Shown here: positions 7,063-39,413 of the stretch, piece by piece
How positions within the stretch are numbered: position 1 is the stretch's first letter
Layout of the letters: every line of letters begins with the position of its first letter
Notes under the pieces: generated by a model
Told to the model about the DNA's origin: nothing
Seen by the model: the letters and a program-made list of their open reading frames with translations, nothing else
Databases searched by the model: none
NCBI GenBank assembly: GCA_965112735.1
Contig: OZ218953.1
Location: forward strand, 62,001-126,000
Source: Phaeosaccion multiseriatum
Taxonomy: Eukaryota > Protista > Ochrophyta, other classes
Length of the DNA: 64,000 nucleotides
Reading direction: 5' to 3'
Translations under genes and position numbers: made by a program

Positions 7063-7107
<45 letters not shown>

Positions 7108-13100: not shown

Positions 13101-16100
13101 CACGTGGAAGCAGCGGCCGTCCCTTAGGTGCTCGCTCTCGGAGGGCAGGCAGGAGGGGCCGGGGTCGCAGATGATGCGCACATGGATGGGCGACAGCGCC
13201 CGCGTGTAGTAGCGGAGGTTGGCCACGCTGCCCTCGAGTCCGCCCCGCACTCCGTCCAGCAGAGAGCCCAGTGAGGCAGAGGAGCACACCTTGCCCACAT
13301 AGAGCGGGTGATTGGCGCAGTGCCCCCCGGGGTAGCCGTGCCCCCTGGAGTAGCCGTGCCCCCCGGGGTAGTTGTCGTATCCGCTGCCGTGGTGGTGGCT
13401 GCCAGAGGTGTTGGAGCGCTGGCAGTCTAAGGCCCCATTGAAGTACAGTTTGAGTTTGCTGCCCTCACTCACCAAGCTGATGTGCACCCACTCATTCAAG
13501 CGCACTTGCTCCTTGCTGGTGAGGCGCTCGCTCAGTGTGTGTCCCCCTCCCCTCCCTCCCCCCCCCCCTCCGTGACACACCTCAAGACGTCTGTCAGTGT
13601 CGCGCAGCAGCAGCACGGGCCAGCAGCAGCCCCCCTCCCCCCTGCACAACACCGTGCGGTAGTGACCGGTCCAGTCCTGCTCGAGCCTCAGCCACAGCGT
13701 GATGGAGAAGTCCGAACTATCTCTATTGGGGTTGTGCAGGAGCTGCTCCGGCGTGAAGACCAGCCCGTCCTCCATGTTCATGAGTCTCCTCGGCAGGGTG
13801 ATGAGTTCTTGACAGCGCCTCTTGTGCCCGCCAGAGCCCGATGATCGTGCCGCCGCGGCTTCTCCTCCTCCGCCACTGCTCGTGCCGCTGCTGCTGCCGC
13901 TGCTGCCGCTGCTGGTACTGCTGCTATTGCTGTTGGTGCTGCCGCTTCTGCCGCTGCCGCTCCCTCTTCGCTCTTGACGCGGCTGGGCGGGTGCCTCCCC
14001 TGCCTCCCCTCCCTCTGACTCTGTCGGGACTGCAGTGGCGGCAGAGGTGCCCGCACTCTCGTGGGTCTTCCCCTCAGCAGCCGTGTTGGTGAGGGCTCTC
14101 GTTGGGGAGCCCCCACCCTTTTCAGCCCCGCCCCCCCCGCCGCGGAGGAGGAGAGTGCTCTTGCCCCTGGCCCGGAGGCGCAGCGCTGAGAGCGCACACA
14201 GCGCAGACAGAGACGCATCCGCCTCACTATACAGAGCAGAGAACACAGAGGGCAGCGCCCAGCCCGACCCGAGGGGGGACGCGCCGTGGCCCGCCTCTGC
14301 CAGCTGCATGGCAAGCACTCGCACCAGCGCCAAGGCGGCGAAGCTCAGGCTGCTGTCCTCTTGCGGGCAGTGGGCCAAAGCACCCCCTCCTCCTCCTCCT
14401 CCTCCTGCCTGTCCTCCCCCTCCCGCCAGGCGCCGGCCTCGCCCCGTCCCGCCCCCCCCTGCCAGGGCCGAGGTGTCCGGAGCGCTATGAGGGGTGTGCG
14501 GGGTGTCAGGACTGCGGCTTGCGAGCTGCAGGGCCGTGTGCATCACTCCGCATTGCTCGAGCCTGGGCCAGTCCTCGCCGCCCACCCGCATGCCCAGCGC
14601 GTCAAGCAGCAGCAGCACCGAATGCGAGTCGAGAGCTCCTGCTGCTGCTGATGATGATGATGATGATGATGATGACGAGAGAGCATCTGCCTCCCCCTCC
14701 CCCTCCCCTGCCGTGCTGTGCGGAGGGAGGGGGAGGCGGGCCCTCTCCCTGAGGGCGTGTAAGAGCCCCTCGAAGCACTTCCAGTAGGCTTCTCTCACCT
14801 CCTCCCTGGCCTCTCTGCACACCCCACCAAGCAGCGTCAGGCTCTTGCCCTGCAGGCAGGAGGGATGGCGCATGGTGAATGCATAGGTGGCGAGGCAATC
14901 CCCGAGCAGGGAGGGCAATCTCCACGACCGCCTCGCCAAGCTAGAGAAGCCACGCAGCCCAGAGGCGCGGAAGGCGGCGCGGCGGTGTGAGTCGGCCACG
15001 AGCAGCAGCAGGCACACAGGGGAAGCCACGCGGTAGACAGAGCGCCTCCGCTTCCCTCCTCTCGGAGTGTGTAACGCCTCCTGGAGCATGTCCTTGACGA
15101 AGTTTGACGGGCCCAACGCCTCCCTGGACACGTCCCTGGCAGTGTTCTTGTCAGAGGCCCCTGCCCTCGCCACTCGCCTCCACCGCAGGCCCGCCCTTGT
15201 GAGCAGCAGCGCTCTCCGCCACAGAGCATGGGCCCGCCCAGAGCTTGACCCAGACACTCCTTCTGATCTTTCTGATCCGGACACCGGCGAGGGCAGCGGC
15301 AGCAGAGTGGGCAGCACGCGAAGCAGCCCTGCAGAGGCGGGCAGGGAGGGAGGATACACTAATACTTTGCCGAGCACGCCACAGCACACCACTTCGGCCT
15401 GCCTCAGCAGAGCATCCACAGAGGACGGGGGGGCGTCGTTGGCGCGGAGCTCACTTCTCGCCTGCCACAGCCACTTGGACACGTCCGCCACCGCCGCCCA
15501 CACGCGCTGCAGCAGCGGGGCAGGCGGGGCTGTATCACCAACTGCTGTATTGGCCGCGAGGGCCGCGAAGGCTGTGAGGCCTCTGTACTGGAGCAGGGCG
15601 CTGCATAAGCCCCTCTCCACCGCACAGAGCCGCGCCCACTCGGTGCTCCTCTGTTTGGCAGAGGCCCCCTCCCCCTCCTCTCTTTGGCCCCCTTGGCTCT
15701 GCTCTTGTTTGGCTCTGTGGGCGGCGCTTCTCTCTGCCTGCAGCAGCACTGCTCTGTACGCGGCGTCTCTCCTCGAGTGCGTTGTGCGCAACCTCTGCAG
15801 CAGGGCCGCAAAAGGGCACTTGGCCGGGGGCTTGGGGGGGCACAGGAGGGCCTCCGTCAACAGCCTGGCAGAGGCGCTCAGGCTGGCCACAGTCACAGTC
15901 ACAGTGCCGACTGTCACAGTGCCGACCTCACCGCTGGGTGGGGCCGCCACTGCTGTCGTGCGCTTCGCCTTGCGGGCCTTGCCTCCTCTCGCGGTAGCAG
16001 GAGGAGGAGGAGCGGCAGCAGTAGTAGCAGTAGGGTCCGCGTTCCCCCCGGGGAGCCCAAGCCGGTTCCGCCGGCCCTGCCATCCTTCGGGCTGCAGCTG

Positions 16101-19100
16101 CCTCAGCCCCCCCTGGAGCAGCTCCGAGGCCAGCCACTTGCGGTAACACGCCCTCTCTGAGCGGTGCAGGGGCCGCAGCAGCAGAGACGCCGGCCCGTCG
16201 CCAACTGTGAGGGCAGAGCACAGCCGCCCCACAAGCAGCGCAGTGCTCTTGGCCAGGCCCAGCAGCCACGGCAGAGCCCCGGGGGGAGGCTGGGAAGGCG
16301 ATGGGGCAGACGCCTCCGCTCCTCCCACCCCTCCACTGCCATTCCCGTGTCCGCTGCGGGCTAGCACGTACTGCTTGTCTGCCCTGGCGATCGTCCCCCC
16401 TCCTCCTTCTTCTGCTGCCACCTCGTCGAGGGCAGGCAGCAGGAGGAGGAGGGGGGGCACCAGACGAGAGGCGAAGAAGCTGTTGGAGGAGAAGGCAAGC
16501 AGACTCTGCACCACCGACGGCAGCACGAGCCCCACACACGTCGATGAGAGCCGCTCCTGGGCCGACGCCGTATCACCAACTGCCGCATCACAAGGCCGCG
16601 TCCTCTCCTTGTCCACGAGCGAGGTGCAGACCGCCAGCACGGCTTCGGAGTACGCCACAAGGCACCCCCACGCCCCCGCCTCCCCTTCCTCCCCGTGCAG
16701 GCCCCGCAGCAGAGCGATGGCCCTCTCCAGGGGGGGCAGCGCCGCCAGCGCCAGCCTCTCCTCTTTGTCTCTGTGTCCGTCTCCTTCGCCGTTCCTCTCC
16801 AAGAAGAGATACTTATCTGCCCACAGATGGAGTTTCACGTGTGCCCTGTCGGAACTTGCTGCCCAGTGCAGCAGCGGAGGATGCAGCGCCAGGACCAAGC
16901 GGACCATCGCCGCCCTGACGTTCCGCTGCTGTACCACCAAATGCTGCACCACCCCCTGCTGCTCTGGCAAGGCGGGCTCCTCCGCACCGAGCTTGTCCAC
17001 GAGCAGGCACAGGAGCCGCAGCAGAGGAGCGCCGTTGGTGGTACAGCTGTTGGTGGTACAGCCTGTGAGGGGCTGGGGGGGCTGCTTCAAGACGGGGCGC
17101 GGGACAGCTTCTGCCTCCTCCGCCTCCCCGGGGGGCGCGAATGGCACCAGACGCGCCGCCAGGACGTCGTCGGAGAGTCTGCCCAGCAGCGGCAGAAGGA
17201 GCGACAGCCTGGCCCGGCACGCCGCAGGAGCCGAGAGGAGGCCCACAAGCAGCGCGCACTGCTGCTCCGGACTGGCGTAGAACAGCTCCACCCCCAGCAC
17301 GATGGTCTTGGCCGCCTCCAGCCGCACCGCCAGCGCCGCCTGAGAAGGCAGCAGCGTCTGCTCCCCAGAGGGCTGGGTCCCCTCCCCCTCTCCTTGTTGG
17401 ATGCCCTCCCCCTCCCCCTCCCCCTCCCCTGTGAGGTGCAACAACTGGAGCAGCCCCCCCAAGAGCCCGTGCAGCGCTTTAGCCATGCGCCAAAGCTCCC
17501 CCTGCTCCTCCCCCTGCTCCTCCCCCTGCTCCTGTGAGGGAGGCGGAGGCAGGAGGGTCTCAGTGGCTTCCCCCCTCGGGCCGACCTTGCTGACCAGGAG
17601 CGAGTCTCTGAGGACCGACCCGAGGGGGCTGCGCAGGAGCTGCGCCACGTTGGCTCTGAGCACGCGTAGGCAGGCCAGCAGCGCATATGGCAGCCAGGCA
17701 AGGGGGATGGCAGTGGAGGGGGAGGAGGCGCGTCCCTTTGCCCCAGCCCCCCGGGGTGTTTTGGCTTGTTGGTGCAGGTACGTGAGCGTCTCGAGGGCCC
17801 GCTCGAACATGTCGGGCCCGAGCTCCACCGCGTAGGCCTCCCCGTCCGCTGCCATCCCCTCGCGCCGCCCGTCCGCAGCAGCCCCTCCACTGCCATCTCC
17901 ACGCGCTGCTCGAGCGGCTACCGCTGCCGCTTCCGCTTCTAGCGCCAGCGCCCGTGCGTTGCGCTCCCCCGGGGGGGGCAGCAGCAGCGGTTCCTCCTCC
18001 CTCTTGGGCAGGAAGGGCCGAGACAGCCGCGCCATGTGCAGCAGGATGCTCACCGCGGCCTTGGAGCACGGCAGAGAGGTCAGCGCGGTGTCAGGACTTG
18101 GTCTTTGCTCTTGCCGCGCCCTCCGCCGCCGCCCCCGCCCCTTGTGGCCTCCCCCCCCTTGGCCTTGGCCTGGCCCCTCTCCGTCACATCCACGGCCAAC
18201 AAGGCCAACCAGGGCGGAGACAGGGCTGTCTGCCGTGCGCTCTGCCTTGCCTGCTCGTGATGGCCCGTCGAGGGAGAAGGCGAAGTCGGGCGTGGCCAGG
18301 AGGGTGGAGGCCAGATACAAACCCTTCTCCTCTCTCTCGCTGCCTTTGCTGCTTTTCTTGCCGCCCCTGCCTTTGCCGCTGTCCTTCCTTCTGCTGCCTC
18401 TGCTTCCCGACCCCTCCCTCACGGCTCCTCCTTCTCCTCCTTCTCCTCCTTCTCCTCCTCCTCCTCCGTATCCGTCTCCATCTACATCTTCCTCCCCATC
18501 ATCATCGGATTCGTCGCTTCGTCCGTCGCCGTCGCTATCCCTGTCCAAAGGCTCCCCGGACCCCTGCGGCCGCCCATATGCCTGGCCATAGGCCTGCCCA
18601 TATGCCTGTCCCCATGTGTGGCGAGGGCCCTCCTCCGCCGCCATGCCGGTCTTGCCCCTTGCCCCGGTGAGCACAATGGTGTGGTAAAAACCACATGCCA
18701 CTTTCACCACTCTGCATGTGAGAGAGGGGAGGAGTCAGGGGAGGGGAGAGAGGGGACGAGACGGGTAGGGACGCGTGAGAAGCGCCGAGCTGCTGGGGAG
18801 CGCCTGCTGCTTCCATTCACAAAGCTGAATTAAAGCTGAATTAAAGCTGAATTAAGGCTGAATTAAAGCTGAAGGTCCCATCACACGCACCTCCGCCCCA
18901 CGAAGGTCTCTACAGGCCTTGGTGAGTGTCTCTCTGTGGTGTCCCCCGTGCCGAGCTGCCCGTGATTGTTGCGCCCGAACACGAGCAACAGGCCCGAGCC
19001 GCACACCAGTACGGTGTGGTAGCAGCCCGCCGCGATGCGCACCACGCCCTTGGCCTCCATGCCCTCCAGCATCTGCAGCGGTTGGTGATACGGCATGGGG

Positions 19101-20068
19101 GTCAGAGGAGAGGTGGCACAGAGGGACAGAACGCGTGGAGGGACTCTGCTGCTCTGCCTCTCTGCTTCTCTCCTGTGCCTGGTGCCTGCTCTACCCTGCT
19201 CTGCTCTGCTTCTCTCCTATGCCCTGCCCTGCCCTGCCCTGCTCTGCTGCGCACCTGCGGGCCGTACACTCGTTGTGTGATGTGCCCTAGCCCGAGCTGT
19301 CCGTAGTCGTTGCGGCCGAAGCCGAACACCCGGCCGCTCTTGCACAGCACCATGGTGTGGTAGTAGCCGCACCTGACACACAGCAAAACAAGGCAAGGCG
19401 AGAGAAGGAGGGGAGCCCCCGGGGGGTTGGTGACGTGAGGTCCTTTCCAAAGCCCCTTTGCTGCTACAAGCAAGCAAGTTGCAGCAAGGGAGGCAGGGCA
19501 AAGAAAGCCCAAGCCCAGCCGCACCTGATACTGACGCTTTGCTCCTCCTCGAGGGGGCCCTGCAGGCGCGTGAGTTTCTTCCTCGCCTCCTGCCCCTCCA
19601 GGCCGAGCTGTCCGTAGTCGTTCTTGCCGCAGCCCCAGGCCTGCCCCCCGCAGGCCACCACCGTGTGGTACTGTCCACAGGCGAGGGTGTCCACCTGCGC
19701 GGGATACACAGCCGCCGCAGCGCCCCCCTCCCCTCCGCTCAGCGGCTCGAGTCGAAAGGGCGTCTTACGGTCCTTGACATCTCCCGTGCCGAGTTGCCCG
19801 AAGTCGTTGCGGCCGAAGCTGAAGATGAGCCCCCCTTCGCACGCCACCACCGAGTGGTAGTACGAGCACGACACTTTTGTGACGCGCAGCCCCTCCAGGC
19901 CGAGCACCCTGCGGGGAAGAGTCTCGCTGGCGGTGGTGCTGTGGCCGAGCTGCCCGCGGTAGTTGTACCCGAAGGAGAGCAGCTGTCCGCAGGCTGAGGG
20001 GGGGTGAGGGGGGGGAGGGGGGGGAGGGGGGAGGGGGGAGGGGCGTTGGGTTAGGTAGACTTTCTGTG

Positions 20069-20101
<33 letters not shown>

Positions 20102-23100
20102 CCTACTCACTGGTGACGACGAGGGTGTGCTCGCAGCCGTTGTAGGCGTGCACCTGCGCGGGCGTGAGTCCCTCGAGCGAGGCGGGGTCCACTTCAGTGA
20201 GCCTGCTCACGCGCTGAGTGTTGCCCTGCCCGCACTGGCCGTTGTCGTTGTAGCCCGCCGTGAGCAGCCGGCCCGAGCGGCACAGCAGCACCGTGTGCTC
20301 GTTGCCTGCCGCTACGTCCACCACAAACAATGGGGCGGATGTATTACTGACTAAAGCTGGTGCTGCCGCCCGTTCTGCTGCTGTCCCTGCTGATACTGTC
20401 CCTGCTGCTCCCGGGGTGGCGGCGGCAGCGGTGGTGGTGGTGGTGGTGGTGGTGGTGGTGGTGGTGGTGGTGGTGGCGCCAGTGAGGCTGCCGGTCATGG
20501 TGGTGATAGTGGCGGTGGGCGGTGATGGCCCTCGGGCGGGGTCCGGTGCGGGCTCCAGACAGATGCGAATGTGCTCCCTGCGAGACACCGTGTCCCCGTG
20601 CGCGAGCTCTCCATAGGTGTTCTGTCCGCAAGTCCAGATCTCCCTGGAGTGCTGGCTGGGCCGTCTGTGCCCCTTCGCCCCCACCTCCGCGCCCCCCGCC
20701 GCCCCCTCCACGTCCAGGCGAGAGCGCCGCCGCAGAGAAGCGCTCTTCTGTGGGCGGGCGTCCCGAAGTTGCGACACAAGTCCAAGCGCCGGAAGGAACT
20801 CCAAGCCCCTCCTGTCCTCTTGATCAGTGTCGTCGTCGCTACCGCCGCTGCTGCTGCTGCTTCCGCTACCTCCGCTGATGTTGCTACCGCTGCTGCCGCT
20901 GCTGCTACTGCCGCTGCCGCTGCTGCTGCCACCGCTTCGACTGCGCTTGCGCGATGTCTTCCGCCGCCCTTGCTCTGCGCGCCTGGCCCTTTGCTCGAGC
21001 TTGAGCCGCTTCCTCTCCCTGAGCTGCTGTTTGTCCCTCGGCGGCTCCTGCGGCTCGGGCTGAAGGAAGGCCTTGCTGGACTTGCTGGCCTTGCTGCGGG
21101 CAGAGTCCTTGTCCCTCGTGCTGAGCTTGCGAGTCTCGCCTCGAGAGGACTCCCCCCCCTTGACTGGACCCCACGTGTACTCCCCCTTCCCCGCCGAGGT
21201 GTCGAGTGTGGGCAGCACCCCTCTTGCCCTCGACATGGGCATCGACATCGATAACTGCAGTCGCTCCTCCTCCTCCTCGTCGTCGCCCCCAGGATGTGCG
21301 CTGTCGTCCCTTCCTTCGCCTCCCCCCACGGCCACAGTGGCCATGGCGGGATCAATGGGCTTCTTGTAGCTGCTGGCGTAGACTGCCTTCTTCTGCAGCT
21401 TGGCGTTGGTGCTCACAGCCGCGGCGGACACCGACGCTACAGCGGTGGCTGTGCCGTCAGCGGTGACGGCAGCAGCGGCAGCATTGGCAGCGGCATCGGC
21501 AGTAGCGGCGGTAGCAGCAGGTGCTAGGGCCGTGGCCGCTCCCCCCCCCCCCCCTCTGCTGCCGCTCCGACTGTGACAGCTTCGACTGTGAGCGCGGCCC
21601 GATCTGCCAGAGAGGAGTGGCGGAGCAGGGGCTGCCTCTAGCTCTCTACCGCCGCACCCCCCTACCCCCCCTGCGTGCCCTCCTGCCAGGCCGTCGACGT
21701 CCGCTCCTCCCTCCCTCGTCTCCCTCGCCCTTCGCTCAGGGGCGCTGAGCCGCGTCCTCTTGGCTCCGGGCGGCGTGCTCTCCTCGCGGTGAGCGTGTGG
21801 CGGGGGAAGGCCGACGCCGAGCATGACTTTGACGACAAGCAGCAAGTCACTCCCTCTCCCTGTGGACGCAGCGAGGTGCAGCAAAGCCGTGGCCGCAAGC
21901 GCTCGCTGCCTTGCCTCCTCGGCGAGGGCGCGTGCGCGCTGTCGGCGGAGCTCCCTTCTCCGCTCCCTCCCCTCCCTGGGACTCCGCAATTGCTGCTGCT
22001 GTTGCTGCTGCTGTTGCTGCTGTTGCTGCTGCTGTTGCTGTTGTTCTTGTTGTCTCCGCTCAAAGGCCTTGTCGTCGGTGTTGCGAAAGGCAAAGTGGTG
22101 CTCGTCGTAGGAGCGGTTCGTCGGAGAGAGACTCGCCTCCTCCGGGCCTCGGTGCTGCTGCGGCTCCTCCTCCGCCTCATCTTGCTGTTGCTGCTGTATC
22201 ACCAACTGCTGCTGTCGTCGGTGGCGGCGCCTCCGCTTTCTGACTCGGGGGAAGGCGTCGTCAAGCGTCGTACTGGGCAAGCTCGCAGACAAGAGGAAGT
22301 GGCGCAGCTCAGAGATCACTCGCTCCTCCTCTGCGGCTGCTGCAGGGGGCAGTAATGCACCCGACGACATGCGCAGAATCCTGCTGTGCACGCTTGCGTC
22401 GGTGAGCAGGCACAGCGGCGGCAAGGCAGACAGGACAGGGGCAATCTCTGTGAGGAAGTCGATGCGCTGTCCCGGGCCACAGCTCTCGTGCCGCGCAAAG
22501 TCGAGCAGTGTGTGAAAGAGACGCAGGCCGAGCACGACACTCTGATCCTTGGGCGTCTGTTGTGTCGCTTCTGCAGAGACTGCAGCGAGTACCGTGCCCG
22601 CCTTGAGAGCCGCCGCAGCGCTGCTTCTCTCCCTCTCCCGCGTCCGGCCCAGCGCGGCGTGTACGCTGTGCATGGCGTGCAGGCGCTGGCTCACCCCTCT
22701 GGGGAAGGTGTCTCTGCCTCTCGTGGCGCTGCAGAGGTGCTTGAGATGTGTGACTGCTCGACCACACGCCGCGGCCTGCACGGCTCGCTCTTGCCCAGCG
22801 CTCAGCTCGTCCGACGAAATCGCCAGCGCCGCACTGCTCAAGTCTCCAAGATCCCAGCCGCCCCACCCGCCTGAGCTATCCCCTGCTGCAATCCCCAGGG
22901 CCTTGGCCGAGCCCGCTCCTCCCGCAACCCCTCCTGCTGCCAACAGAGCTGGCGCCGCGGCCGCTATTGACGAGCCGCTGACGGCGCCACCGCTGCCGTG
23001 CCCTCTACTCGCCGCCCCCCTCGCGTTACCGCCACTCACACCTTCGGCCGGGGCAGCTGCTGCAGCCCGCAGCTGTATGCAGTCCGGACATGTGCCATTT

Positions 23101-23462
23101 TTCCCATCTGCGAGTGCCCCTGGCACTGTTGCCATCGGCCCAGCCGATGCTGCCGCCCCTCCAATGGCAGTGAGTCCGCTCAAGTCAGGTCCGGATGGGG
23201 TAAGCTTCGGACCGCAATCGCCAGCGAGGATGGCCGCTGAGGGCACTTGAGCCCAGGCTGCGTCGTGCCGAGGATGAGGGAGGGGCCAGCGAGGCTCCAG
23301 CAAGTCCTTCCCGTCCTGGAGGGGGCAGCAGCTGCATCCTCGGCCACTGGTGCTACTGGCGCAGAAAGAGGGTGAAGCTCTTCCGGAGGTGCTCTTGCGT
23401 GCCTCGTGGTGGGCTCGTATACACTCCTGCGCGCCGCCGCCGCCGCTCCCTGCATTACCCAT
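4929..23462 (-). CDS. Giant HERC-like HECT E3 ubiquitin ligase (RCC1 repeats, LamG/ConA-like domain, 2 Zn fingers, UBA, FN3, SPRY, HECT), ~5,800 aa, multi-exon
   Basis: RCC1 repeats (WTCGQNTYGELAHG, VAAGNEHT..GYNDNGQCGQG, FGRNDFGQLGTG, ACGFYHT) at ~20630-18670; LamG-like (FSITLWL..NEWVHISLV..LYFNG..LRYYTRALS) at ~13720-13190; CPLC..H..H fingers at ~11065-10775; UBA (EQLMVIGFPKTWCAMALRAN) at ~10560-10440; FN3+SPRY at ~8390-7570; HECT (FKVKFNGEGVDDYGGPYRE..LPKAHTCFFSINLPRY) at ~6220-4990. Long ORFs are linked by GT-AG introns (e.g. 10063-9936 and ~12259-12101); junctions in the RCC1 region are only approximate. Confidence 0.88.
18821..18872. repeat. Intronic tandem repeat (AAAGCTGAATT)x~4.5
   Basis: Directly visible 11-bp tandem units inside a HERC intron. 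Confidence 0.9.
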
Positions 23463-23782
23463 TTTTTCAGACCCGCTCCCAAACCCCTCTAATTCTCTCT
23501 CCTTCCCCTACTGACTGCTACAGCTACTGCTACTCCTGCTGCTACCGCTGCTCCTACTTTACGTCTCCTCTCTCTGTTGTCTCGCGGGGCAGCGCATCGT
23601 TAAGCGCATAGCGCTAGGTGGGTACGCGCAAATCTGGCGGAGAGAGAAAGGAAACGCCATTCGGCGTCATTGACATATGATAGATTGGCTTTAATTGGGT
23701 ACCCAACCACGGTTAGCTATTTTGGGCCTCCCTTGGCGCCACGAGTTTCCAAACACTCTTTCCACTTCCTCCCTCCATAACA

Positions 23783-25447
23783 ATGTGGACAAGGCGGGGG
23801 AGGAGTAGGAAAAGGGCCAGGAGCTTGCCGGCCGCAGATTTTGCGGGCGAGACAGTAGCAGCAGTGGCAGCCTCGGCGACGCAAAGACCTTCAGGCATCA
23901 GACCCTGGTCTCGGCTCAGGGTGGTGGGGTACGTCTCCGCCCTTCTGGTCTATTCCGTGGCGTCCGGACAGGCGGCATCAGCAGCAGTACTTGGGATAGC
24001 TGGAACCACCCACTCGATTAGCGAGGGCAGGGGTGGGAGCCTGCGATGGAACAGTGACAGTCCGAGGAGGAAACGCGGGGTGGTGGTTGAGGTGGCGGCG
24101 GCGGCCTCGGCATCGGCCCCAAAACAAAGCCAGGAGGCACATCTGGGCCAGTACCTTAGCAGAGGCGTGAACGCAATACGGGGCTCCGTGCAGAAGAGTC
24201 TCAGGGGGTCGAAGGGGCTTTTTGTCGACAAGGTGAGGGCGGGTGTGGTGGTCGGGAGGGAGCTTGGCTGCTGCTTGACTGCTGCTTTGCCTCTTTCCTT
24301 TCCCGGAATAAACGAGTTTCGTAATGTGTCCTTCTTCGAGCAGGAGGCGAATCGCAGAGAAGTGCACAAGGCCAAGACGCTGGGTCTGCGGCCGGACTAC
24401 AAGCTCACCTTCTGGGGCCACATGGCGGCCGGCGCGGTGAGCAGGAGCGTGGCGCAGACGGCGCTGCACCCCGCCAACGTGCTCAAGACGTTGCTGCAGA
24501 CCAAGGGCTCCTTCCAAGCCGTCTTGCCGCTGTCGGTGAACGACCTGATGCGGGGCGCTGGCGCACAGTTCCTGCTGTCGCTCCCCAACGGCGCGCTCCA
24601 CTTTGCAGTGCTGGAGAACACCAAGGCGAGCGTGGCAAAAGCCTTTCCCGGCTCCGAGAAGAAAATGTCGGCCCTCATGGACTTCGCCGCGTCTTGCGCG
24701 GCCACCACCATCTGCTCCATCACCAGCACGCCGCAGATGGTGCTGACCAACCGCATTATGGCGGGCGTGTACCCCAACCTTGCCAAGGGCGTGCGCAGCG
24801 TGGCCAGGGAGGGCGGGATCAAGGGCTTCTATGCGGGATGGCTGCCGGGCCTCGTGCAGAAGATCCCCTCGTACGGGCTGACGTGGGTGTTCTACCAGCA
24901 GGTCAAGGACGTGCACTACAAGGTCACCAAGCGCCTGCCCACAGACCAGGAGAACTTCTGGCTGGGCAGTCTGGCCGCCGCCGGATCCGTCACAGTCATG
25001 ATCCCGATGGACGCGGTCAAGACGCGGCTCGTCACCCAGGTGGCGGGCGATCCAAGGCAGTACAAGGGCATCATCGACTGCTTCGCTCGTATGGTGAAGG
25101 AGGAGGGCGTGGGTAGCTTGTACAATTCGCTCATGCCCCGCCTGCTGTCCGTCGTGCCCATGATAGGTGAGTTGTGCTGCGGTGTGGTGTGTGGCGCCCC
25201 TCATCCCCTCCATCACTTACGTGCAATCTCTCTCCCGCAAGTGCCGGACTCACCCTCCCACTCTTTTTTGGCCTTCGTTCCCACCTCCCTCCCCTCCATC
25301 CTGCCTCTCTGTCCACCTGTGCTGTGCTGAATGAATGGCACAGGGCTTCAATACGGCACGTATGAGTTCATGAAGCGGCTGCTGGCAGAGGATGGGCTGG
25401 AGGAGGGCATCATTGAGGCCGCCTCCGTGGTGGACCAGCAGGAGTAG
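23783..25447 (+). CDS. Mitochondrial carrier family (SLC25) protein, SAM-carrier-like, with long N-terminal extension
   Basis: Three carrier repeats (AGAVSRSVAQTALHP..; GGIKGFYAGWLPGLVQKIP; IPMDAVKTRL..YKGIIDCFARMVKEEGVGSLY..PRLLSVVP); probable intron from 24233; last exon from ~25344 GLQYGTYEFMKRLL..QQE* (TAG 25445-25447). Start codon uncertain. Confidence 0.85.
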
Positions 25448-25740: not shown

Positions 25741-26041
25741 TTTGCGTTGCCGTTGCCTCTCTTTGGGTTTCGTTTTCGTTCAAGCAGAGGCATACGGATA
25801 CGGGCGGTTGGGCAGTTGACATTTCACATAAACTGAAACTGAGAACTGAACACCATCGATAGAGAGAGAGCTCCCTTCCCCACCCAAAGGGTATTCCTGC
25901 AAGGAGAGGATGGGTGTGATGTCACTTTACAGAGGGGCCTAAGAGGAATTAAAGGGCTGGCCTTGGCCATGAAGAGATCAAGAATGTCGTGATCATCACT
26001 GGCCTGTAGCAAATTGACCAAGACGCAAAAACCAAGACGCG

Positions 26042-26969
26042 ATGGAGGAACTCGATGAGCTCATCCCCCATCCCGACGTCGAGGGGAGGCTGGACGTGAC
26101 CCACCGCGCGTGGGTGGAGCTGGACAATGTGCTGTGGACCTTTGGCAGGGAACTCAAGTACCTCAACGCGTCGTTCAATAACATCGAGTTCCTCCCGCCA
26201 GAGGTCGGCGACTTGATGCTGCTCGTGGAGCTGGACGTGTCTTGCAACAAGCTGTCAGAATTGCCTCCAGAGATCGGCAAGTTGACGCGGTTGAAAAAGA
26301 TCAAGGCGAACGGCAACTACATTAGGCACGTGCCCGCAGAGCTGGGGAGCTGCTTGATGCTCGAGGAAGTGTACTTGTCGGAGAACAAGCTCGAGGAGCT
26401 GCCCATGTCTCTCTCCAAGCTGCAGGTGGGTGGAGTGCTGCTTTCCCCCTCTGCCGCGGCAGTCAGCAGCAGCAGACAACTAATCCCTGCCTACGCCCTC
26501 TCGTCGCTCAGGGGTTGAGGGTCCTGTCCCTCCAGAACAACAACTTGCTAACCTTGCCGTGTGAGTTGGGGGTGATGCCCACCATCTCAGTACTGGACTG
26601 CACGGGGAACAACAACTTGGAAATGATTCCACCGAGTCTCCGAGGAGACACCAAGATGGTGGTATGGATCTGCCATCTGCACAAAGGCGAGTACGGGGAG
26701 TCGGAGGGGAGGGGGTGTCAGCAGTGGTGCTGACTAGTGTTTGCGTCTTCCCCGCAGAGTACCGCGACGAAATCGCCATGCTTGAGAGGCTCAATACCGC
26801 CCTGGAGGGCAAGACGCAGCGAGTGGAGGAGCAGCGGCTGCGGCTCAAGGAGGAGATGGAGCACCTCGAGTTCGAGAAGCGTCGCCTGCTCAAGGAGAGG
26901 CCCGCTGCCTACCTCGCCGCCAAGCGCAAGGTCGTGCACGCCGCGGGAAGCTGCTGCGTGTTGTGCTGA
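26042..26969 (+). CDS. Leucine-rich-repeat protein with C-terminal coiled coil and CaaX-type end (3 exons)
   Basis: Typical LRRs (LxxLxxSxNxLxxLPxEIG); GT intron from 26426, GC-AG intron 26687-26757; coiled coil ending AAGSCCVLC*. Confidence 0.85.
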
Positions 26970-26996
26970 ACACTTAGTATTGAAATAATTCAGTAA

Positions 26997-28993
26997 TTAC
27001 ACACTTGTCTCGTTCAGTGAAACGTCTTTTCCAAGGGCGTTTTGCCTGGCGGCGTCCCTGACGCGCTGCAGCGGCACTCCAAGGAGCAGCGCCACCGCCC
27101 TGCAGTCCTCAAACTCCGCCTTCGCCTTGACCACCTTCCCGTCCAACACGCCCAGCTTCACGGAGATGACGGGCACAGGGCTCTGGTAGGCAGGGCTCGG
27201 CTGCAGCAGGTCACTGGCGCGCAGCTGCACAGCGACTGTCCTCCTCTCCAAGGCGCATCTTCCCACCCGCCTGACGCGAACACCGAGCGTGGGGCTCTCT
27301 TCAAAGAGGAGGCGCAGAAGAGCGCTCTTGTCCTCTTGGCGATTGCGATGCAACACGTGGAGCGTCATCGCAGGCCTGCCCTTCTTCATCACGATGGGGG
27401 ACGTCCAGCAGTCCAGCGCTCCCTTTGCCAGAGCTTGCTCAACAAGCCAGGCCGCCGCCTCCCCAGTCATGTCATCAACGTTAGCCTCCAGCACCGAGAG
27501 CTCCTCCTCCTCCTCCCACTCGCTGGCACCAGCAGCAAAAGCAGGTGTAGTGCCAATGGTAGTTTTCGTCGTGGTCGTAGTCGTGGTCGTAGCAGCAGCA
27601 GCAGCGCCCTCCGCGGTGTCTCCAATGACGACCCGAAGGATGTTGGGGTGTTTTGCAAAGTCCTTGGTGCCCGCCCCGACGCCAACGGCTGCCGGGGTGA
27701 AGCAAGGCGACCGACCAAACTGGTCCTGGCATAGGACCTTGACAAGGGCGGCTCCTGTGGGGGTGACGAGCTCGCCAGACGCGCTCTTGGGACCAGGGCA
27801 CACGGGAATGCCCACAAGCAGGCGGAGGGTCGCAGGGGCTGGGACGGGCTGCGGGGAACACAAGGGCAGAGAGCAACATCAGGGTTAAGAGCAACAGCAG
27901 TGTGAGGCTGTGCGAGGGGCCTTGGGAAGGCATCACTCGAAGGAATCACTCGCGGTTGTTCCACCCACCATAATCCCGTGTGCACCAAAGACAGTCCCAC
28001 TGCTCATGGGCAGCGGCGAGCAGTGCAGCTGTTCCACCCCCAGCAGGTGCAAGGCGAGCACGCAGCCTGTCACGTCGACGATGCTGTCCACCGCTCCCAC
28101 CTCGTGGAAGTGCACTGAGTGAAGGAGAGGGAGGGAGGGAGGGAGGGAGGGAGGGAGGGAGGGGGTTAGTGAGTGAGTCAGTGAGTGAGTCAGTGAGTGA
28201 GACAGACAGGGGGAGAGTGAGTGAGTGAGTGAGTGAGTGAGTGAGTAAGTACATGGCTCGAGGTAGGGCTGGGAGACTGTCACTGCCGTAACTGCCCAGT
28301 CTTCTTACCCGCGCTCAGCGTGGTCCCGTGCGTTTCAGCTTCGGCTTGCCCCAGGGCCGTGAAGACGTCAATGGCCCTCTCCTTGACCACCTCCGGCAGC
28401 TTGGACTCTCTCAACAGCTCGCAAATTGAGTCCAAGTTCCGCAGAGGCTCCGAAAGCTTGCTTGTGGCTGGGGCTGGTGGTGGGTGGGGGGGCAGGGATG
28501 TGCTGTTCTTTTCCTCCTCTCCGACGGCAGACAAGTCGCTGTTCAAGCTTCGCGCCACTTGCCCCAGGCCCGTGGGCAAGGACTCTTCCTCCTTCTCGCC
28601 ATGGTGCTCCGGTCCAGCAGCAGCAGCAGGCGCTCCACTTTCCTCTTCCCCCTCGATGGCATGACTGTGGCTGTGACTGTGGTTATGGCTGTGGCTATGG
28701 CTGTGGCCGTGGTCATGGCTATGGTCGTGGCTATGCTGATGGTCATCTTCGTCCGAAGGCACTGGCGCTGGTTGATGATTGTATCTGCTCTTTACAATTA
28801 CTGACAAGGCTGCTATCCTGCCCATACTCTTGTGCACCCGGCGAACCTCCAAGCTGAACTCGTCCTTGATGGGCAGAGTCTTAAGCCCCTCTAACACATC
28901 GGCTAGCAGCCCTTCTCCGCCTACGTCAAGCAAACCGCCGAGCAGCATGTCCCCGGCCACACCACTGAAGGCATCAACGAAGGCGATCCTCAT
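26997..28993 (-). CDS. larC: LarC nickel-pincer nucleotide (NPN) cofactor nickel insertase (DUF111), spliced, 3 exons
   Basis: Exons 28993-28309, 28114-27969, 27848-26997 with GT-AG borders give [23 protein letters not shown], His-rich tract, [92 protein letters not shown], i.e. the recognisable LarC blocks. Confidence 0.93.
28125..28246. repeat. (GGGA)n/(GAGT)n microsatellites in larC intron 1
   Basis: Tetranucleotide tandem runs visible in the sequence. Confidence 0.85.
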
Positions 28994-30958
28994 CGTCCCA
29001 CACCCAAGAGCAGCAGCAGCAGCAGTAGGAGAGACTGTACGGTGAGGAGAGCAACAGAAGGGAATTACATCCCGCGTAATGATGAGAAAACCAGAGGAGA
29101 GGAGAGGAGAGGAAGGAAGGGCGGCAAGGGGAAGGGGAGGGAGGGCAAGAGCAGAGAGCACAGAGTGTCAGACTCTCCACCGCCGGGCGCGAGATTGACC
29201 CGCTTGAACGACCTCCAGCCTTCCCCAAAAGTTGCACACTTCGAGAGACCCTCCAAGACAATCTTCGCACACGTCCGCTGACGCCAATCCTCACACGCGG
29301 GTTGCTGCGGTGCCGGCAAAGAGCCCCTCGCTCGGAGGCTCTTGCCACACCTTCCCCACGCAGCACGTTGAGCTGAGCCCTTTTCGCCCTGCTGTGGAGC
29401 CGGTTTCCAACTTGCATCTCCGAACAACATCCCAAAGGCATTGTGGAACCCAGCACATGCCCGCCCCGACGTGAAACCCCTCTCCTAGAGCACCATGGCA
29501 AGAGGCCAAAAGCCAAAGCCCGGTTATCGGGAAAATGCCCCTTCTTGGCGAGGTGAGTAGAGCACGTACATGCCTGCCGTTGGGCAACTTTCTATGCTTA
29601 ACCTACTCCTTCAGGTGGCTCGTCCCCCCAATTTGGCCCATGGGCCTGCCGCGGGGGGCCCAAAGCAGATATCCACCCTCGCCTCCGATCTCTCTTGAGC
29701 AAACGAAAGTGTACACCAGGGAAGCACCTTTCCGTCGTCAAGCGCAGTCCCCAACTGACCTTTATGGGGGTAGATTGCACTCCAGCAGCTTCGGTGTCCC
29801 TGCGCGGTCTGGGCGTATATGGCGCCGTCCCGAAGGCCCCTCCTGATGCTGGGAAACGGGAAAAAGAGGTCAAAAAAATAAAAAAATAAATGAGTCATTT
29901 TCGTCCACCGTCTCCCCCCTCAGGCAACATCTACACCAGCCTCCCTCAGCAGTACCCAGGCTTCACCCCCCCCAACGGTCAGGCTGTGCGACCGTAGCCG
30001 CCGAGGAGGCCTAGCAGGCTTCACATGCCCCAACAAAGGCCCTGCACGGCCCCCTCTCCAAATCCACCCCACCTGCTCCCTTTTCCGCCGATTTCTCCAG
30101 AAGCTTGCTTTCCTCCGACACGGAAAGCTGCAGTACCCCGAGAAACAGGTCTACTAGGCGCCCGGAGGTTCTTATCTCGCCGTTTATTTCGTCTTTTTTC
30201 TCCCCTTCCAGCCCTTCAAGAGATCTGTGATTTGGATAACCAACCGTCTCACCAAGGGCTACGTCCTTGCCCAGCCTCCGGCGCCTTATTTAAACGCACA
30301 CACACACACGACATACACACGACACAATTACGTAATGCGTAGGTTGATTCCCGTAAGCAAATGCATTTCTCTCCCCTCTCCCCTCTGATCCCCATCTCTC
30401 TCGTCTACAGCATAAGTGCGGCCAGACACTGCTAGAGGCTGCTAGAGACTATCGGATTCTTACTATTGTGAGCCCTGGAGCGATCGATCGGTCCAACGTC
30501 ATAAACTGGAACTGAAACGCACCATCATCCCCCCTCTGCAGACAAGACGGCCCATGCATAGTCTGTGTCGGGGCGGTGGGGCATGGCCCCACTTCACAGC
30601 CTGATATACATTTATCTATGCTTTTAATAACATGTCAGCGATGAACTCGATCAAGAGTACGGAAGAAAGTGCGGAAAGGCCCGTGGCCCACCGTGGCTTC
30701 AGTGGCTGGCCTGTGAGAGTATTCAATGCACGCTTTGGCCTGTCAGTCCCTCTGGGGGAGAGGGGCAGCTGTCCAACAGCATCGAAACAGCAGCCAGGTG
30801 AGAGGTGAGCTGTCCAACAACAGCCAGGTCAGAGGTGACGGGCCGCTCAGCCCGCAGTCGCCATCTTTGGGAAGACGGGGGGTGCTGACTGCCTTGAGAT
30901 GGAGACGGGCATGAGCCATTGCCGCACTCAGTCCTCTGACGAAGAAGGGGTGCTCGGC

Positions 30959-31729
30959 TCATTTTCCTCGCCGGGCGCTTTGGCGAGCTTCATCTCTCAT
31001 CATCAGCATGAACACTGTTGGAGAAGAGATCGGGAGGGGGTACGAAGCGGTCGGGTAAGTCGTGCCTTGCTTTGTAACCATAACCAGTCCGCCAAGTGCG
31101 TGGCGTGCACCACTGGCCTGCAACAGCAAAGCCCAGATCCAAATCTCACCGTCAAAATCCGCGGTGGCCGACATGATTTGCCCGAAAATGGCCTGTGATG
31201 GGAGGTGGGAGGTGGGAGGGGGGGGGGTGAGAGGGGTGAGATGGCCCTTTGCCATCACGGTAACGTGTAAGGTAGGGGGAGAGAGATTGAGCAGAGGGGG
31301 GATGAGGCTCCGCACCTTCTCGTCCATGGGGTCCCGGTCCGCCGCCTCTCGGATCTCGTCGTAGAAGTCGTGTACGGTGGCTCCCTGCTCCTCTATGAAG
31401 GCGGTGAGCTCCTGCTCCATGAGGTCCTGGTACTGCTTGTGGAGCTGTGTGTAAACAAGTTTGTTCTCACCATCTTCATCCTCTGTGGACACTTGGTGCA
31501 CATGCCTTTGGACGAAGTCCTCGAACAAGCCAAAGAACTCTTCGTTCTCGTAGAAAAACTCTTGTACCTGTGAGGGGTGGAGGTAGGGTTGGAGGTAAGG
31601 TTGAGATTGGTTGCGAATCCTCTTTCTGCTCCTGCGCAGCCAATCCTTTTTCTCTCGTACCTTCTTTACGAGTCCCTCCCTCCCCTGCTGCTTACTCTCC
31701 CCTTCTTTACCTTCCCCTTTCTCTTCCAT
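30959..31729 (-). CDS. BART-domain protein (ARL2BP/CFAP36-like), multi-exon
   Basis: FEDFVQRH..GENKLVYTQLHKQYQDLMEQELTAFIEEQG..DFY..QIMSATADFD|VFMLMMR matches the BART domain pattern (ExKLxYTxLHxxYxxLxE, DFxxFxxMM). Confidence 0.8.
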   Translation of the reverse strand: MEEKGEGKEGESKQQGREGLVKKVREKKDWLRRSRKRIRNQSQPYLQPYLHPSQVQEFFYENEEFFGLFEDFVQRHVHQVSTEDEDGENKLVYTQLHKQYQDLMEQELTAFIEEQGATVHDFYDEIREAADRDPMDEKVRSLIPPLLNLSPPTLHVTVMAKGHLTPLTPPPPTSHLPSQAIFGQIMSATADFDGEIWIWALLLQASGARHALGGLVMVTKQGTTYPTASYPLPISSPTVFMLMMRDEARQSARRGK

Positions 31730-31937
31730 TTGTCTTTTTCTCCCCTCCCCTCCAACACCAGCGGCAGCAGATGCGTTGGTGATCCAAGTATTGTTCACAG
31801 TGGGCGTAACGGTTTAGATTTTTTCTTTTTTTTTCTGTTCTTTTTTTGAATTGTAAACTAAAATAATACACGTAAAGGGTAATATGAGAAGAGGACGAAA
31901 AGAGGAGGGGTAGAGCCATGTCCTTATCCCCTTTGTG

Positions 31938-34471
31938 TTATTTGCAATCGAAGCTTGTGAGTGTGATGGCGAAGGCTTGGAGCGGTGTGAGGGGGTGGCA
32001 GAAGTCCATTGTGAACGAGTCCGCCTGGCAAGGAGTGAGTGGGGGGGGGGGGGTTGTGAGTGGAGCGCTCAACGCGTACGTCTAAGGGGGGGCTTGAACT
32101 CACGTCTATCTTGCCGAACTGCAGCATGATCTTCTCGTCCGAGTCATTCTGATCCACGAGCTGGAAGTTCTTCACCGAGGGCTGAGGGCGGGGGGGGGGG
32201 GGGGCACCAGGCATATGGGCAGACACACGGTCAGGCATAAGGGTAGACAGGCAGGCAGGCAGGCAGACAGCGTGTGGAGCTGTGCTGCGCGGCCAATTCC
32301 CCTCACGAGAGGCGGGAAGGAAGGAAGGCGGAGCTCCTCACCTGCGTCACGCGCCCGTGGAAGTTCAGCACGAAGGCCTCCACCTTGGGGTTCCAGCGCG
32401 GCTTGCGGTTCACGAGACGTACATACTCGCCTGTCAGACTACCACGCTTCAGCCGAGACAAGAGGGACGCCTAACAGGGTAAGGGAGGGGAGGGGAGGGG
32501 AGGGGAGGGGAGGGGAGGGGAGGGGCGGGGAGGGGAGGGGAGGGGAGGAGGGCGTGCAGCGACGGACTCGGCATCAGGCCTCGCTAATTTGGCGCAGGGG
32601 GGGGGGAGCTCCTTCTCAAGAAACTCTCAATCCCCACCCTCAACTCCACCCTTCTCTCTCCCCTCGTTTTTCTCTCTTTCTCTCTCCTCCCCTCTCTCTC
32701 CTTCCCTCTTTCTCTCTCTCCCTCTGCGTCTTTCTCCCTCTTCATCCCTGTCTGTCTTCTGTCTCTCTCTCTGTATCTATCTCTCTGTCCTCTCCTTCAC
32801 TCTCTCACCTGCTCTTGCGCCGGCTGCTCGCACAAACGATGTCGAACCGAACACGCAGAGAGAGGGGGCGGGCGGGGGGGGGGGGGTCAGGACTTTGCCG
32901 CAGTAGAGAGAGAAGGGAGTCAGAACTCAGAGAGGGGGGGGGGGAGAGAGTCAGGACTCATGGAAGGGGAGGGGGGGAGAGGGTCAGTCCTCCGCCACAA
33001 GCGCCTTGCCCCGTGGGCGGGCAATGCGTAAAGACTCCTCATCACCAGCCCCCCTCACCAGCTTGTTGAGCGGGTCTGCGAGGCAAGCCCTCATGCATCG
33101 CGGCGAGTCCTCATCAGCCGACCGCTCCGGGGCATAGTACACGGCACAAAGCTCTCTGCGCACAGAGGGGGTCGCTGGGTTGGAGAAGGCACGGAACTCC
33201 GACCGCTTCTTGTCCACGCTGCGCAGCTCACCCACGGAGGCTAAGGGGAAGCCGAGCGGGGGACAGCGGGGGACAGAGGAGCGGGCGGACTCGTTGAGCT
33301 TAGGGTTAGGGAAGTGGGGTGCAAACAAGACAGGGCACGGCAGCTGTGAGCAACAAGAGCGAAACTCACTTGCGCTGTCTTCGTCCATGTCCCCCTCGGC
33401 CTGAGTGATGCAATACGCGGAGGCGGAGACCTTGCCCTTGCCCTTGCCGTCCTTCTTCTTGGCGAAGAGCATTTTGCGGTCAGGGTCCTGCCCCTTACCC
33501 TCCAGAAACAAAGTGTAACCCACACCCGCTCCCCCGCGCAGCCTGGACATGGTGGATTTCCTTCTTCGGATGAAGCACTTGACGGTGCCCGCCTGCCTGG
33601 CCACGGGCAAGGCAAGGAAGGACGGCATGTCCGCGTCCATCAAAGGGTACAGCACCTAGAGAGGAGTTGGTGATACAGAGCATAAGCACAGCACAGCACA
33701 GCAGAGGAGGGACAACCGGGGGGAGACACCCGAGGGGGGGTCAGGCGCTGGCCCACGGGTACATTACCGCCAGCAGGCAGCAGCAGCAGCAGTTGGTGAT
33801 ACAGCACTTGGTGGTACAGCACGGCCCGTCTCACCTGAGGGTCGTAGGCGAGGAAGCTGTTCCTCCTCCGCTGGCGGGGACTGCCGAGCTTGCTCCGCTT
33901 GTCCTCTCTCTGTCCCGAGGGATTGCCTCCCCCACCCTGCCCGTCACCCTGCCCGTCCGCTCTGTGGCCCGCCGCCTTGCCCCCCCCTTCCCCTTCCCCT
34001 TCCCCTCCCCCCCCTCCGCCCATGTCAGCGCTTTGGCCGTACCCAACGCGGAGGTGCGTCTGGTGTGCGCGTGTGTCACTGCGAGCGTGTCCCACGCCCC
34101 TCTCCTTCCTCTCCTCCTCCTCCTCCTCCTCCTCCTCCTCTCCGTCCTCTCTATCAAAGTCAAACTCGTCTGAGTCGTCCTCGAACACGGTCTCTCTGAC
34201 GGAGGCGCGGAGCTCCCCCTCCCCCCCTGGGTTCCCCTGTCGCAACTCGTTGCCAACGGACGGAGAGTGAAACTGAGACGGAGGGGATGGAGATGGCGTT
34301 GGGTCTCGGCTGTCGATGAGCACGGCGCTCTTGCCGAAGGGGCTAGTGTTCTCTCTTCGCTCCTGCTCCTGCTTGAGGGCGTCCTCCCCCGCGGACTCGC
34401 TGAACAGAAAAGCCTCTTCCGCCTCCGCGGCCATCGCTAGTGACGCTCGCTCTTCCTTCAGTCTCTGCTCC

Positions 34472-38227: not shown

Positions 38228-39413
38228 ACTTTTCTCTTCTTCCGTCCCTCTCCTGCGCTCCGTTTGCGCGGCAATGAAGGCCAGGTGGTTGAGTAGAATT
38301 TTCACCTTTTGTAGAGATTAATAGCGGCGAGATTGAATGGGTTGATGAAGAAAGAGTGAGATTGAATGGGTTGATGAAGAAAGAGTGGCTACGACAATCA
38401 CAGAGGAGGGAGGAGGGGCGTTCAGCGGCTTCGGAGAAGGAGAGGGCAGGCTCACCGTCTCCGTCTTTCCAGCACCGCTCTCTCCAGAAACGAGGATGCT
38501 CTGATTGCTGCCTCGCTCCCTGAGGCCTCTAAAGGCCGCCGCGGATATCTCAAACACGTGGGCAGGGAGGTCACGGCTGGCGACGGCCTCTGCGTAAGAC
38601 CTGCGCAGGTCATCGCTGTAGATGTCAAGCCACTGGAAAGGATTCACCGCTATACAAATGTCCCCCGTCTGGGGCAGTTGAGGAAGGGAGGAAGAAGGAG
38701 GAAAGGAGGGAAGGAGGAAGAGACAAGGAGAGAGGGAGAAAGAGACTGGGTTACTTTTTGCAGTAGCACAAAGATCTTACGTTGCCACTTGGGAGCGAAA
38801 GCAGTCTACAGGAGAGAGGGAAGGATGAAAGGAAGGGGGAAGGGAGGGAGGGAGGGAGCGAGGGAGGGAGGAAGGAAGGGAAGGAGCGAGGGAGAGAGGG
38901 CGGGAGGGAGGGAGGGAGGGAGAGAGGGAGGGAGGGAGGGAGGGAGGGGGGGAGGGGGGGGGGGATGAAGGATACTGACCCGAGTATACGGCATGTTGGC
39001 GAAGAATCTCGCTCGTAAGTTCCATAAGATAGCCGGCTCGTGGAGATAGCTGAGGGAGCACATGTCCTCGGTTCCACAAGGGGACAAGGTGTTCTGGTGG
39101 GGGGTCGGGGGGGGGGGGGGGCAGTCAGGGCGGTCGAGAGACAGAAAAGGTGTGCCAGGGGCGTTCATCTCTGGCGCTTGGGCCTCACCTGAAGCGGCAA
39201 GGAAGTCAGGCCAACGCTCGAAAAGGCCTCGTCTCGTAGGTCCACCTCCACCTCTCCGGCCTGCTCCGGCATGCACCTCCCATCCCCTCTCTCAACTCTG
39301 ACGCCAAATCGAAAACCATCGCCGAAGGACTTGGTCACGGTTCCTCTCGCCCAGGCGACAACCGGATCGGGAATAAAAACCTGCTGCCCCTTGAGCTCGC
39401 CCCCGTCTTGCAT
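31938..39413 (-). CDS. Myosin heavy chain with motor domain, IQ motifs, ER/K helix and C-terminal Tubby domain, multi-exon
   Basis: Motor motifs: [110 protein letters not shown]-like exons at ~35020-34630; charged helix; Tubby motifs [79 protein letters not shown] (TAA 31940-31938). Confidence 0.88.

Follow-up and report, generated by a model that had tools for sequence, protein, structure and literature searches.

What is a larC gene doing in the genome of an alga, and does its product still make a nickel cofactor? LarC is the enzyme that inserts nickel into NPN, the nickel-pincer nucleotide cofactor, and we analyzed a larC gene in a stretch of 64,000 nucleotides from Phaeosaccion multiseriatum (assembly GCA_965112735.1, contig OZ218953.1, positions 62,001 to 126,000 of the forward strand). 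This stretch is referred to below as the window, and its own numbering is used throughout. We found that larC is a transcribed, spliced, three-exon nuclear gene. Sequence comparison further indicates that it is an old nuclear resident of the stramenopiles, vertically inherited, and not a contaminant or a recent transfer. We consider it probable that this is a nuclear orthologue of the stramenopile larC genes, in an alga related to the brown algae (Phaeophyceae/Xanthophyceae clade), and that it encodes a cytosolic LarC1-LarC2 enzyme making the NPN cofactor for a LarA-family isomerase.

The gene model was obtained by exhaustive enumeration of stop-free, frame-keeping arrangements with GT..AG introns, near the coordinates proposed in an earlier note on this DNA. 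A single model survived, on the minus strand from 28993 to 26997, with three exons and a product of 560 aa (Table 1). When the exons were searched as three separate in-frame pieces against profiles, Pfam PF01969 (Ni_insertion, 375 positions) was matched by exon 1 at positions 2-111 (E 1.6e-18), by exon 2 at 115-162 (E 2.3e-16) and by exon 3 at 163-374 (E 9.9e-63). Because these matches are contiguous (2-374 of 375), the exons abut on the profile and nothing is missing. Among NCBIfam models, LarC1 (TIGR00299) extends over all three exons, and the exon-3 piece, at residues 118-250, matches LarC2 (NF052512, E 1.1e-33). Exon 3 also aligned with the Lactiplantibacillus plantarum LarC2 crystal chain 6bwo_A (E 4.6e-15) and with Moorella thermoacetica LarC (PDB 12bi), to which exon 2 aligned as well, at chain residues 134-179. 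By profiles and structure alignments the product is thus a LarC at the sequence level, with LarC1 followed by LarC2 in one polypeptide. The larC gene of L. plantarum has a programmed frameshift between the two domains (PMC13510736); here LarC1 and LarC2 lie in the same frame within exon 3, so that none is needed. The earlier note had described a full-length larC whose N- and C-terminal halves share one spliced open reading frame (ORF) with two GT-AG introns and no need for such a frameshift, and had proposed PF01969 as the check on its product; the unique model and the end-to-end profile coverage bear out this description. It had also seen one intron as filled with microsatellites of host type. 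This too agrees with what we found, since a tetranucleotide repeated 31 times occupies 28127-28250 in intron 1, and other parts of the window contain similar purine-rich arrays, such as those at 38811-38965 and 32483-32548. Upstream of 28993 no in-frame ATG was seen in the sequence or in the ORF list, and the protein begins straight with the conserved LarC N-terminus at this first in-frame ATG. As it has no N-terminal targeting extension, LarC is probably cytosolic.

Next, we placed contigs from public sequencing runs, none of them labelled as RNA, on window positions 26400-29600. One contig of 1754 nt (record 23) from run X5, a run with 34 Mb of contigs from a second, multi-species study, lies on 26967-27848, 27969-28113 and 28309-29025. 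Both larC introns are removed in it at the predicted junctions; the joint from 27848 to 27969 skips 120 nt that end in CT..AC on the plus strand, which is GT..AG on the minus strand. In contigs from X1, X3 and X4, all of one other sample, intron 2 is read through without a break; these contigs are genomic. The leucine-rich repeat (LRR) gene located 3' of larC (26400-26861, plus strand) is also spliced in X5, with joints from 26422 to 26509 and from 26684 to 26756, and X5 contig depths vary between genes. For these two reasons X5 behaves like a transcriptome. Compared with the window, its larC allele has two synonymous changes, four non-synonymous ones that are conservative, and an in-frame 3-nt indel. 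The earlier note had made its reading of the gene depend on transcripts, and the spliced contig with both predicted junctions supplies one.

We then asked to which LarC proteins the product is related. The best match in a word search with exon 3 was Scytosiphon promiscuus (53% identity), followed by Thalassiosira. With Scytosiphon LarC as the query, matches were found in the brown algae Ectocarpus, Choristocarpus and Discosporangium, in Tribonema (Xanthophyceae), Nannochloropsis (eustigmatophytes) and Attheya (diatoms), and in the oomycetes Phytophthora, Peronospora, Bremia, Aphanomyces, Albugo, Achlya, Globisporangium and others. Many of these stramenopile matches, including those from Ectocarpus and oomycetes, carry the UniRef name "Nickel insertion protein". 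Brown-algal LarCs share 46-55% identity with the spliced product of the window gene, oomycete LarCs 37-46%. In an unrooted IQ-TREE tree of 94 rows (quick search), it falls in a clade with Phaeophyceae and Tribonema (branch value 98), which is nested in a clade of 46 rows (branch value 96) in which every named row comes from a stramenopile (eustigmatophytes, oomycetes and diatoms) and the 21 unnamed rows are metagenomic or transcriptome proteins. The bacterial rows are separated by a further branch with a value of 98, and the groups in the tree match stramenopile taxonomy. The phylogeny that the earlier note had proposed therefore yielded only part of what it was meant to provide: the stramenopile grouping was recovered, but a donor lineage was not obtained, since the tree is unrooted and its bacterial rows were chosen as the best matches to eukaryotic queries.

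The exact exon junctions of larC in six relatives provided a second line of comparison. Five intron positions are common to brown-algal and oomycete larC. The first, between IDA and G (phase 0), was seen in Ectocarpus (resolved), Nannochloropsis and three oomycetes, and Scytosiphon exon 1 ends at the same residue. The second, between PK and S (phase 2), occurs in Scytosiphon, Ectocarpus and three oomycetes. Two others, between V and GxGAGTK (phase 1) and between VK and L (phase 0), are each present in Scytosiphon, Ectocarpus and Aphanomyces, and the fifth, between EDC[RK] and A (phase 0), in Scytosiphon, Ectocarpus and Globisporangium. These shared introns imply that larC was already an intron-bearing nuclear gene before ochrophytes and oomycetes split. 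All five have been lost from the window gene. Its intron 1 is one nucleotide off the intron that precedes VHFHEVG in Scytosiphon and Ectocarpus (phase 1 versus phase 0), and its intron 2 position was not seen in the six relatives.

The deposited LarC model of Tribonema minus (P0163, L005 10001-14396) looks mis-annotated: its conserved AEAxTHG region is interrupted by an odd insert, and a segment after DSIVDT that the other aligned full-length LarCs all have is missing.

To assess whether the product could act as a nickel insertase, its residues were compared with those of Moorella LarC in PDB 12bi (chain numbering is native + 18) by pairwise HMMER and MAFFT alignment. Alanine substitution of Moorella D15, R71, E104, E119, D124, D128 and E187 markedly cut activity (PMC13510736). 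All seven residues of this acidic pocket are kept in the window protein, as D15, R185, E218, E233, D238, D242 and E303 in the same order. Of the nine residues in the His cluster, five (Moorella H108, H116, H118, H160 and H226) are retained, as H222, H230, H232, H274 and H344. In LarC2, conservation extends to the motifs EANxDDxTGE, MKKxRP and EFEDC, which line up with the L. plantarum chain 6bwo. Brown algae, oomycetes, eustigmatophytes and diatoms have all kept both the acidic-pocket residues and these LarC2 motifs. Just upstream of the site corresponding to Moorella H70 and H72, stramenopile LarCs have an HSH-type His-rich loop of 30-120 residues, where bacteria have a short His motif. In the alignment the expanded loop is present in brown algae, Tribonema, Nannochloropsis, oomycetes and Attheya, and in the window protein it comprises 32 residues (81-112). 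This loop may take over part of the nickel-binding surface.

These features set the window protein among its stramenopile relatives, for which our comparison set comprised Ectocarpus siliculosus (P0121), Scytosiphon promiscuus (P0001), Choristocarpus (P0124), Tribonema minus (P0163), Nannochloropsis, Phytophthora/Peronospora/Aphanomyces and Thalassiosira. It shares with them the LarC1-LarC2 architecture, the HSH-type His loop, P[LIVM]RN in place of HRH, a CPGPKS insertion and a long interdomain linker. It is unlike them in having extra low-complexity inserts (after the His loop, in a Thr-run linker and in LarC2) and in its introns: the five positions common to brown algae and oomycetes are lost, one intron is offset by 1 nt from a brown-algal one, and one is unique. 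The bacterial references were M. thermoacetica LarC (cryo-electron microscopy, PDB 12bi-12bl) and L. plantarum LarC2 (crystals 6bwo/6bwq/6bwr). The window protein has the same domains in the same order as bacterial LarC, along with the 7/7 acidic pocket and the conserved LarC2 motifs, but it is 560 rather than about 400 aa long, its His loop has ~30 residues rather than a few, and H70 and H72 are replaced. Moreover, its gene is nuclear, spliced and monocistronic, and lacks the L. plantarum frameshift.

The genes around larC were also compared between species. An apparently single giant RCC1-domain gene (4932-23507, minus strand), assembled from open frames of 1683, 746, 2292 and 1134 aa (stop-to-stop), is 42-44% identical over >1300 aa to an RCC1 gene of >4500 aa that lies beside larC in Scytosiphon, and Ectocarpus has an RCC1-domain gene beside larC too (by Pfam only). 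The position of the RCC1 gene relative to larC differs, being downstream in the window and upstream in Scytosiphon and Ectocarpus. The mitochondrial carrier encoded next to larC in the window shares 64-69% identity with its counterpart (L005 16262-21498) at the larC locus of Tribonema minus, where the orientation is convergent as well. Synteny with Scytosiphon/Ectocarpus and with Tribonema agrees with a long residence of larC.

LarC is expected to work together with LarB, LarE and a LarA-family client, and we searched for these partners with bacterial LarB (NF033503), LarE (TIGR00268) and a LarA homologue, taken from lar loci fetched with Fervidibacter LarC. None of the three was found up to 10 kb on each side of larC (8 kb for Globisporangium L006) in seven eukaryotic loci, from Phytophthora citrophthora, Nannochloropsis salina, Aphanomyces invadans, Scytosiphon, Tribonema, Globisporangium and Ectocarpus. 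In a word search for eukaryotic LarA with the Fervidibacter LarA homologue, the 120 matches listed were all bacterial by name or unnamed. In Candidatus Fervidibacter sinensis itself, larC is followed by a convergent gene for a 528-aa LarAH14/15/16 protein (L013 8001-11164; NF052592, 700 bits), a family to which the gluconate epimerase of Phytophthora also belongs. The only literature that we found on lar genes in diatoms, brown algae or oomycetes was PMC11770544, whose supplement has no list of eukaryotes. According to this paper, genes for NPN biosynthesis as well as LarA homologues are found in unicellular eukaryotes, every eukaryotic LarA homologue belongs to the gluconate-epimerase branch, and LarAH15 of Phytophthora nicotianae, as shown in 2024, is a D-gluconate 2-epimerase when supplied with NPN (PMC11770544). 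LarAH15 is the one NPN-dependent enzyme of a eukaryote whose activity has been demonstrated. The stramenopile lineage that it comes from has an orthologous LarC, but the enzyme belongs to the LarA family and is a different protein. Because all eukaryotic LarA homologues fall in that branch and Fervidibacter has such a neighbour, the client of the window LarC would most likely be of the LarAH14/15/16 (gluconate 2-epimerase) type.

How did the gene come to be there? That it is bacterial contamination of the assembly, or a dead pseudogene, can practically be dismissed. Only the prokaryotic flavour of the LarC family speaks for it, whereas spliceosomal introns are removed in the transcript contig, the frame is intact over 560 codons with conserved catalytic motifs, the same larC sequence was obtained in two independent studies, and eukaryotic genes flank larC on the same contig. 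The earlier note had argued from ordinary eukaryotic neighbours that contamination was unlikely, and the flanking carrier, RCC1, LRR and BART genes together with the spliced introns uphold that argument. That the gene was acquired horizontally from a bacterium in recent times and then gained its introns rapidly would fit a family that is overwhelmingly prokaryotic, and a gene with two introns only, of which one sits where none of the other genes examined has an intron. We nevertheless regard it as very improbable: the nearest relatives are brown-algal and Tribonema proteins, the gene tree mirrors the stramenopile groups, synteny with Scytosiphon, Ectocarpus and Tribonema is kept, brown algae and oomycetes have five intron positions in common, and the His loop and a two-residue CPGPKS insertion are shared across the clade.

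If the window protein makes the NPN cofactor, LarC2 would, by homology with bacterial LarC, bind CTP and CMPylate pyridinium-3,5-bisthiocarboxylate mononucleotide. The CMPylated intermediate would then enter the LarC1 acidic pocket and there receive the nickel carried by the histidine surface of LarC1, which is supplemented by the 32-residue His-rich loop, to become the NPN cofactor. The user of this cofactor would be a 2-hydroxyacid isomerase of the LarA family, most likely one of the LarAH14/15/16 type as in oomycetes. Enzymatic activity of the window protein is expected by homology with bacterial LarC. Several observations count against the cofactor reading. Moorella H70 and H72 correspond to L184 and N186, and Moorella H53 aligns to S56, with H54 two residues earlier; P[LIVM]RN occupies the H70/H72 site in all aligned stramenopile LarCs, and in some bacteria, too, one histidine of this pair is missing. 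Low-complexity inserts interrupt the protein (~65 aa after the His loop, the Thr-run interdomain linker, and 16 aa in LarC2), and linker length and composition matter in Moorella LarC (PMC13510736). The 'DNA?' label of run X5 is guessed, so that its RNA origin rests on the spliced contigs of two adjacent genes. Finally, tblastn gave no match to LarA, LarB or LarE in the 64-kb window (best E 0.33), in line with the earlier note, which had seen no larB, larE or larA-like gene there. The protein might be an expressed but orphan or repurposed LarC, with at least one partner (LarB, LarE or LarA) missing from this lineage and with a role in binding, storing or delivering nickel or another metal, or in some unspecified nucleotide-dependent metallation. 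The greatly expanded His loop, the loss of H70 and H72, and the absence of partner genes from the window and from within 10 kb of larC in the seven eukaryotic loci would suit such a role. We think it unlikely, however. The acidic-pocket residues and LarC2 motifs are conserved in a pattern of retained catalysis rather than of a mere metal binder, in oomycetes, which possess an orthologous LarC, a LarA homologue shows activity when given NPN (PMC11770544), and eukaryotic pathway genes are normally unlinked, so that missing clustering says little. We therefore favor synthesis of the NPN cofactor as the probable function of the window LarC. By analogy with these relatives, LarB, LarE and LarA would be encoded elsewhere in the genome, and a complete NPN pathway in Phaeosaccion, which the earlier note had inferred, is plausible.

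Table 1. Features of larC and of neighbouring genes, in window coordinates (UTR, untranslated region).
Feature	Coordinates	Strand	Description
larC exon 1	28309..28993	-	ATG 28993-28991; residues 1-228 and first base of codon 229; N-terminal part of LarC1 with SGVAGDM motif (D15), His-rich loop, R185, E218, H222
larC intron 1	28115..28308	-	194 nt, GT..AG, phase 1, directly 5' of VHFHEVG
larC exon 2	27969..28114	-	residues 229-277; LarC1 core with H230, H232, E233, D238, D242, plus H274
larC intron 2	27849..27968	-	120 nt, GT..AG, phase 0, at the HGIM / PVPAPAT boundary
larC exon 3	26997..27848	-	residues 278-560 and TAA stop 26997-26999; end of LarC1 (E303, H344), Thr/Ala-rich interdomain linker, entire LarC2 domain
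larC 5' UTR, minimum	28994..29025	-	at least 32 nt, from extent of X5 contig record 23
larC 3' UTR, minimum	26967..26996	-	at least 30 nt, from extent of X5 contig record 23
His-rich loop coding region	28658..28753	-	residues 81-112 of the translation, His alternating with Ser/Asp/Gly
LarC2 (CTP-binding) domain coding region	27099..27497	-	residues 395-527, including EFEDC; NF052512 match
RCC1 repeats	20106-23507	-	domain match of ORF
Mitochondrial carrier gene	23717-25327	+	domain match; convergent with larC
LRR gene ORF	26018-26515	+	domain match
ARL2-binding BART domain gene	30962-31813	-	domain match

Some further features of larC loci were seen in single lineages. Genes of the adh_short family lie within about 10 kb of larC in Scytosiphon (L004 22352-25760), Ectocarpus (L007 22459-25274), Globisporangium (L006 10115-13705, three in tandem) and Aphanomyces (L003 1-761); none was seen near larC in the window. 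This proximity may be due to chance, since short-chain dehydrogenases/reductases are common, or may hint at a linked sugar-acid pathway. In Phytophthora citrophthora a PF10282 lactonase gene (L001 8504-9661) divergently adjoins larC, which would fit a gluconolactone/gluconate metabolism feeding a gluconate 2-epimerase. The adjacency is not kept in the other eukaryotic larC loci examined. At the far end of the window, a 145-copy (AGTC)n microsatellite (60029-60600) overlaps a long open frame (60031-61455, plus strand).

Public databases already contain eukaryotic LarC proteins under that function's name, and the window gene adds one member to them and no new kind of system; that eukaryotic lar homologues had perhaps been noted before, a caveat of the earlier note, is confirmed by PMC11770544 and by the UniRef names. 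What is newly added is a transcript-verified larC model, shared introns and synteny for an ancient stramenopile larC, and a clade-wide expansion of the His loop. The gene is also present in the brown-alga lineage, whereas the literature mentions only "unicellular eukaryotes". Should the partner genes exist, these algae would use nickel in a second way, for the epimerisation of hydroxy acids or gluconate, and the expanded His loop would offer a natural variant for studying nickel storage and delivery by LarC. A broader possibility, which we put forward tentatively and with less confidence than the function proposed for the window protein, is that the NPN pathway is an ancestral nuclear trait of stramenopiles. 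Under this proposal larC, perhaps with a linked LarAH14/15/16-type isomerase as in Fervidibacter, would have entered before ochrophytes and oomycetes diverged, gained its introns then and been kept since, including in multicellular brown algae and their relatives, with the lineage-specific His loop as a nickel reservoir. If so, NPN chemistry would be a regular part of algal and oomycete sugar-acid metabolism and not a curiosity of a few unicellular eukaryotes.

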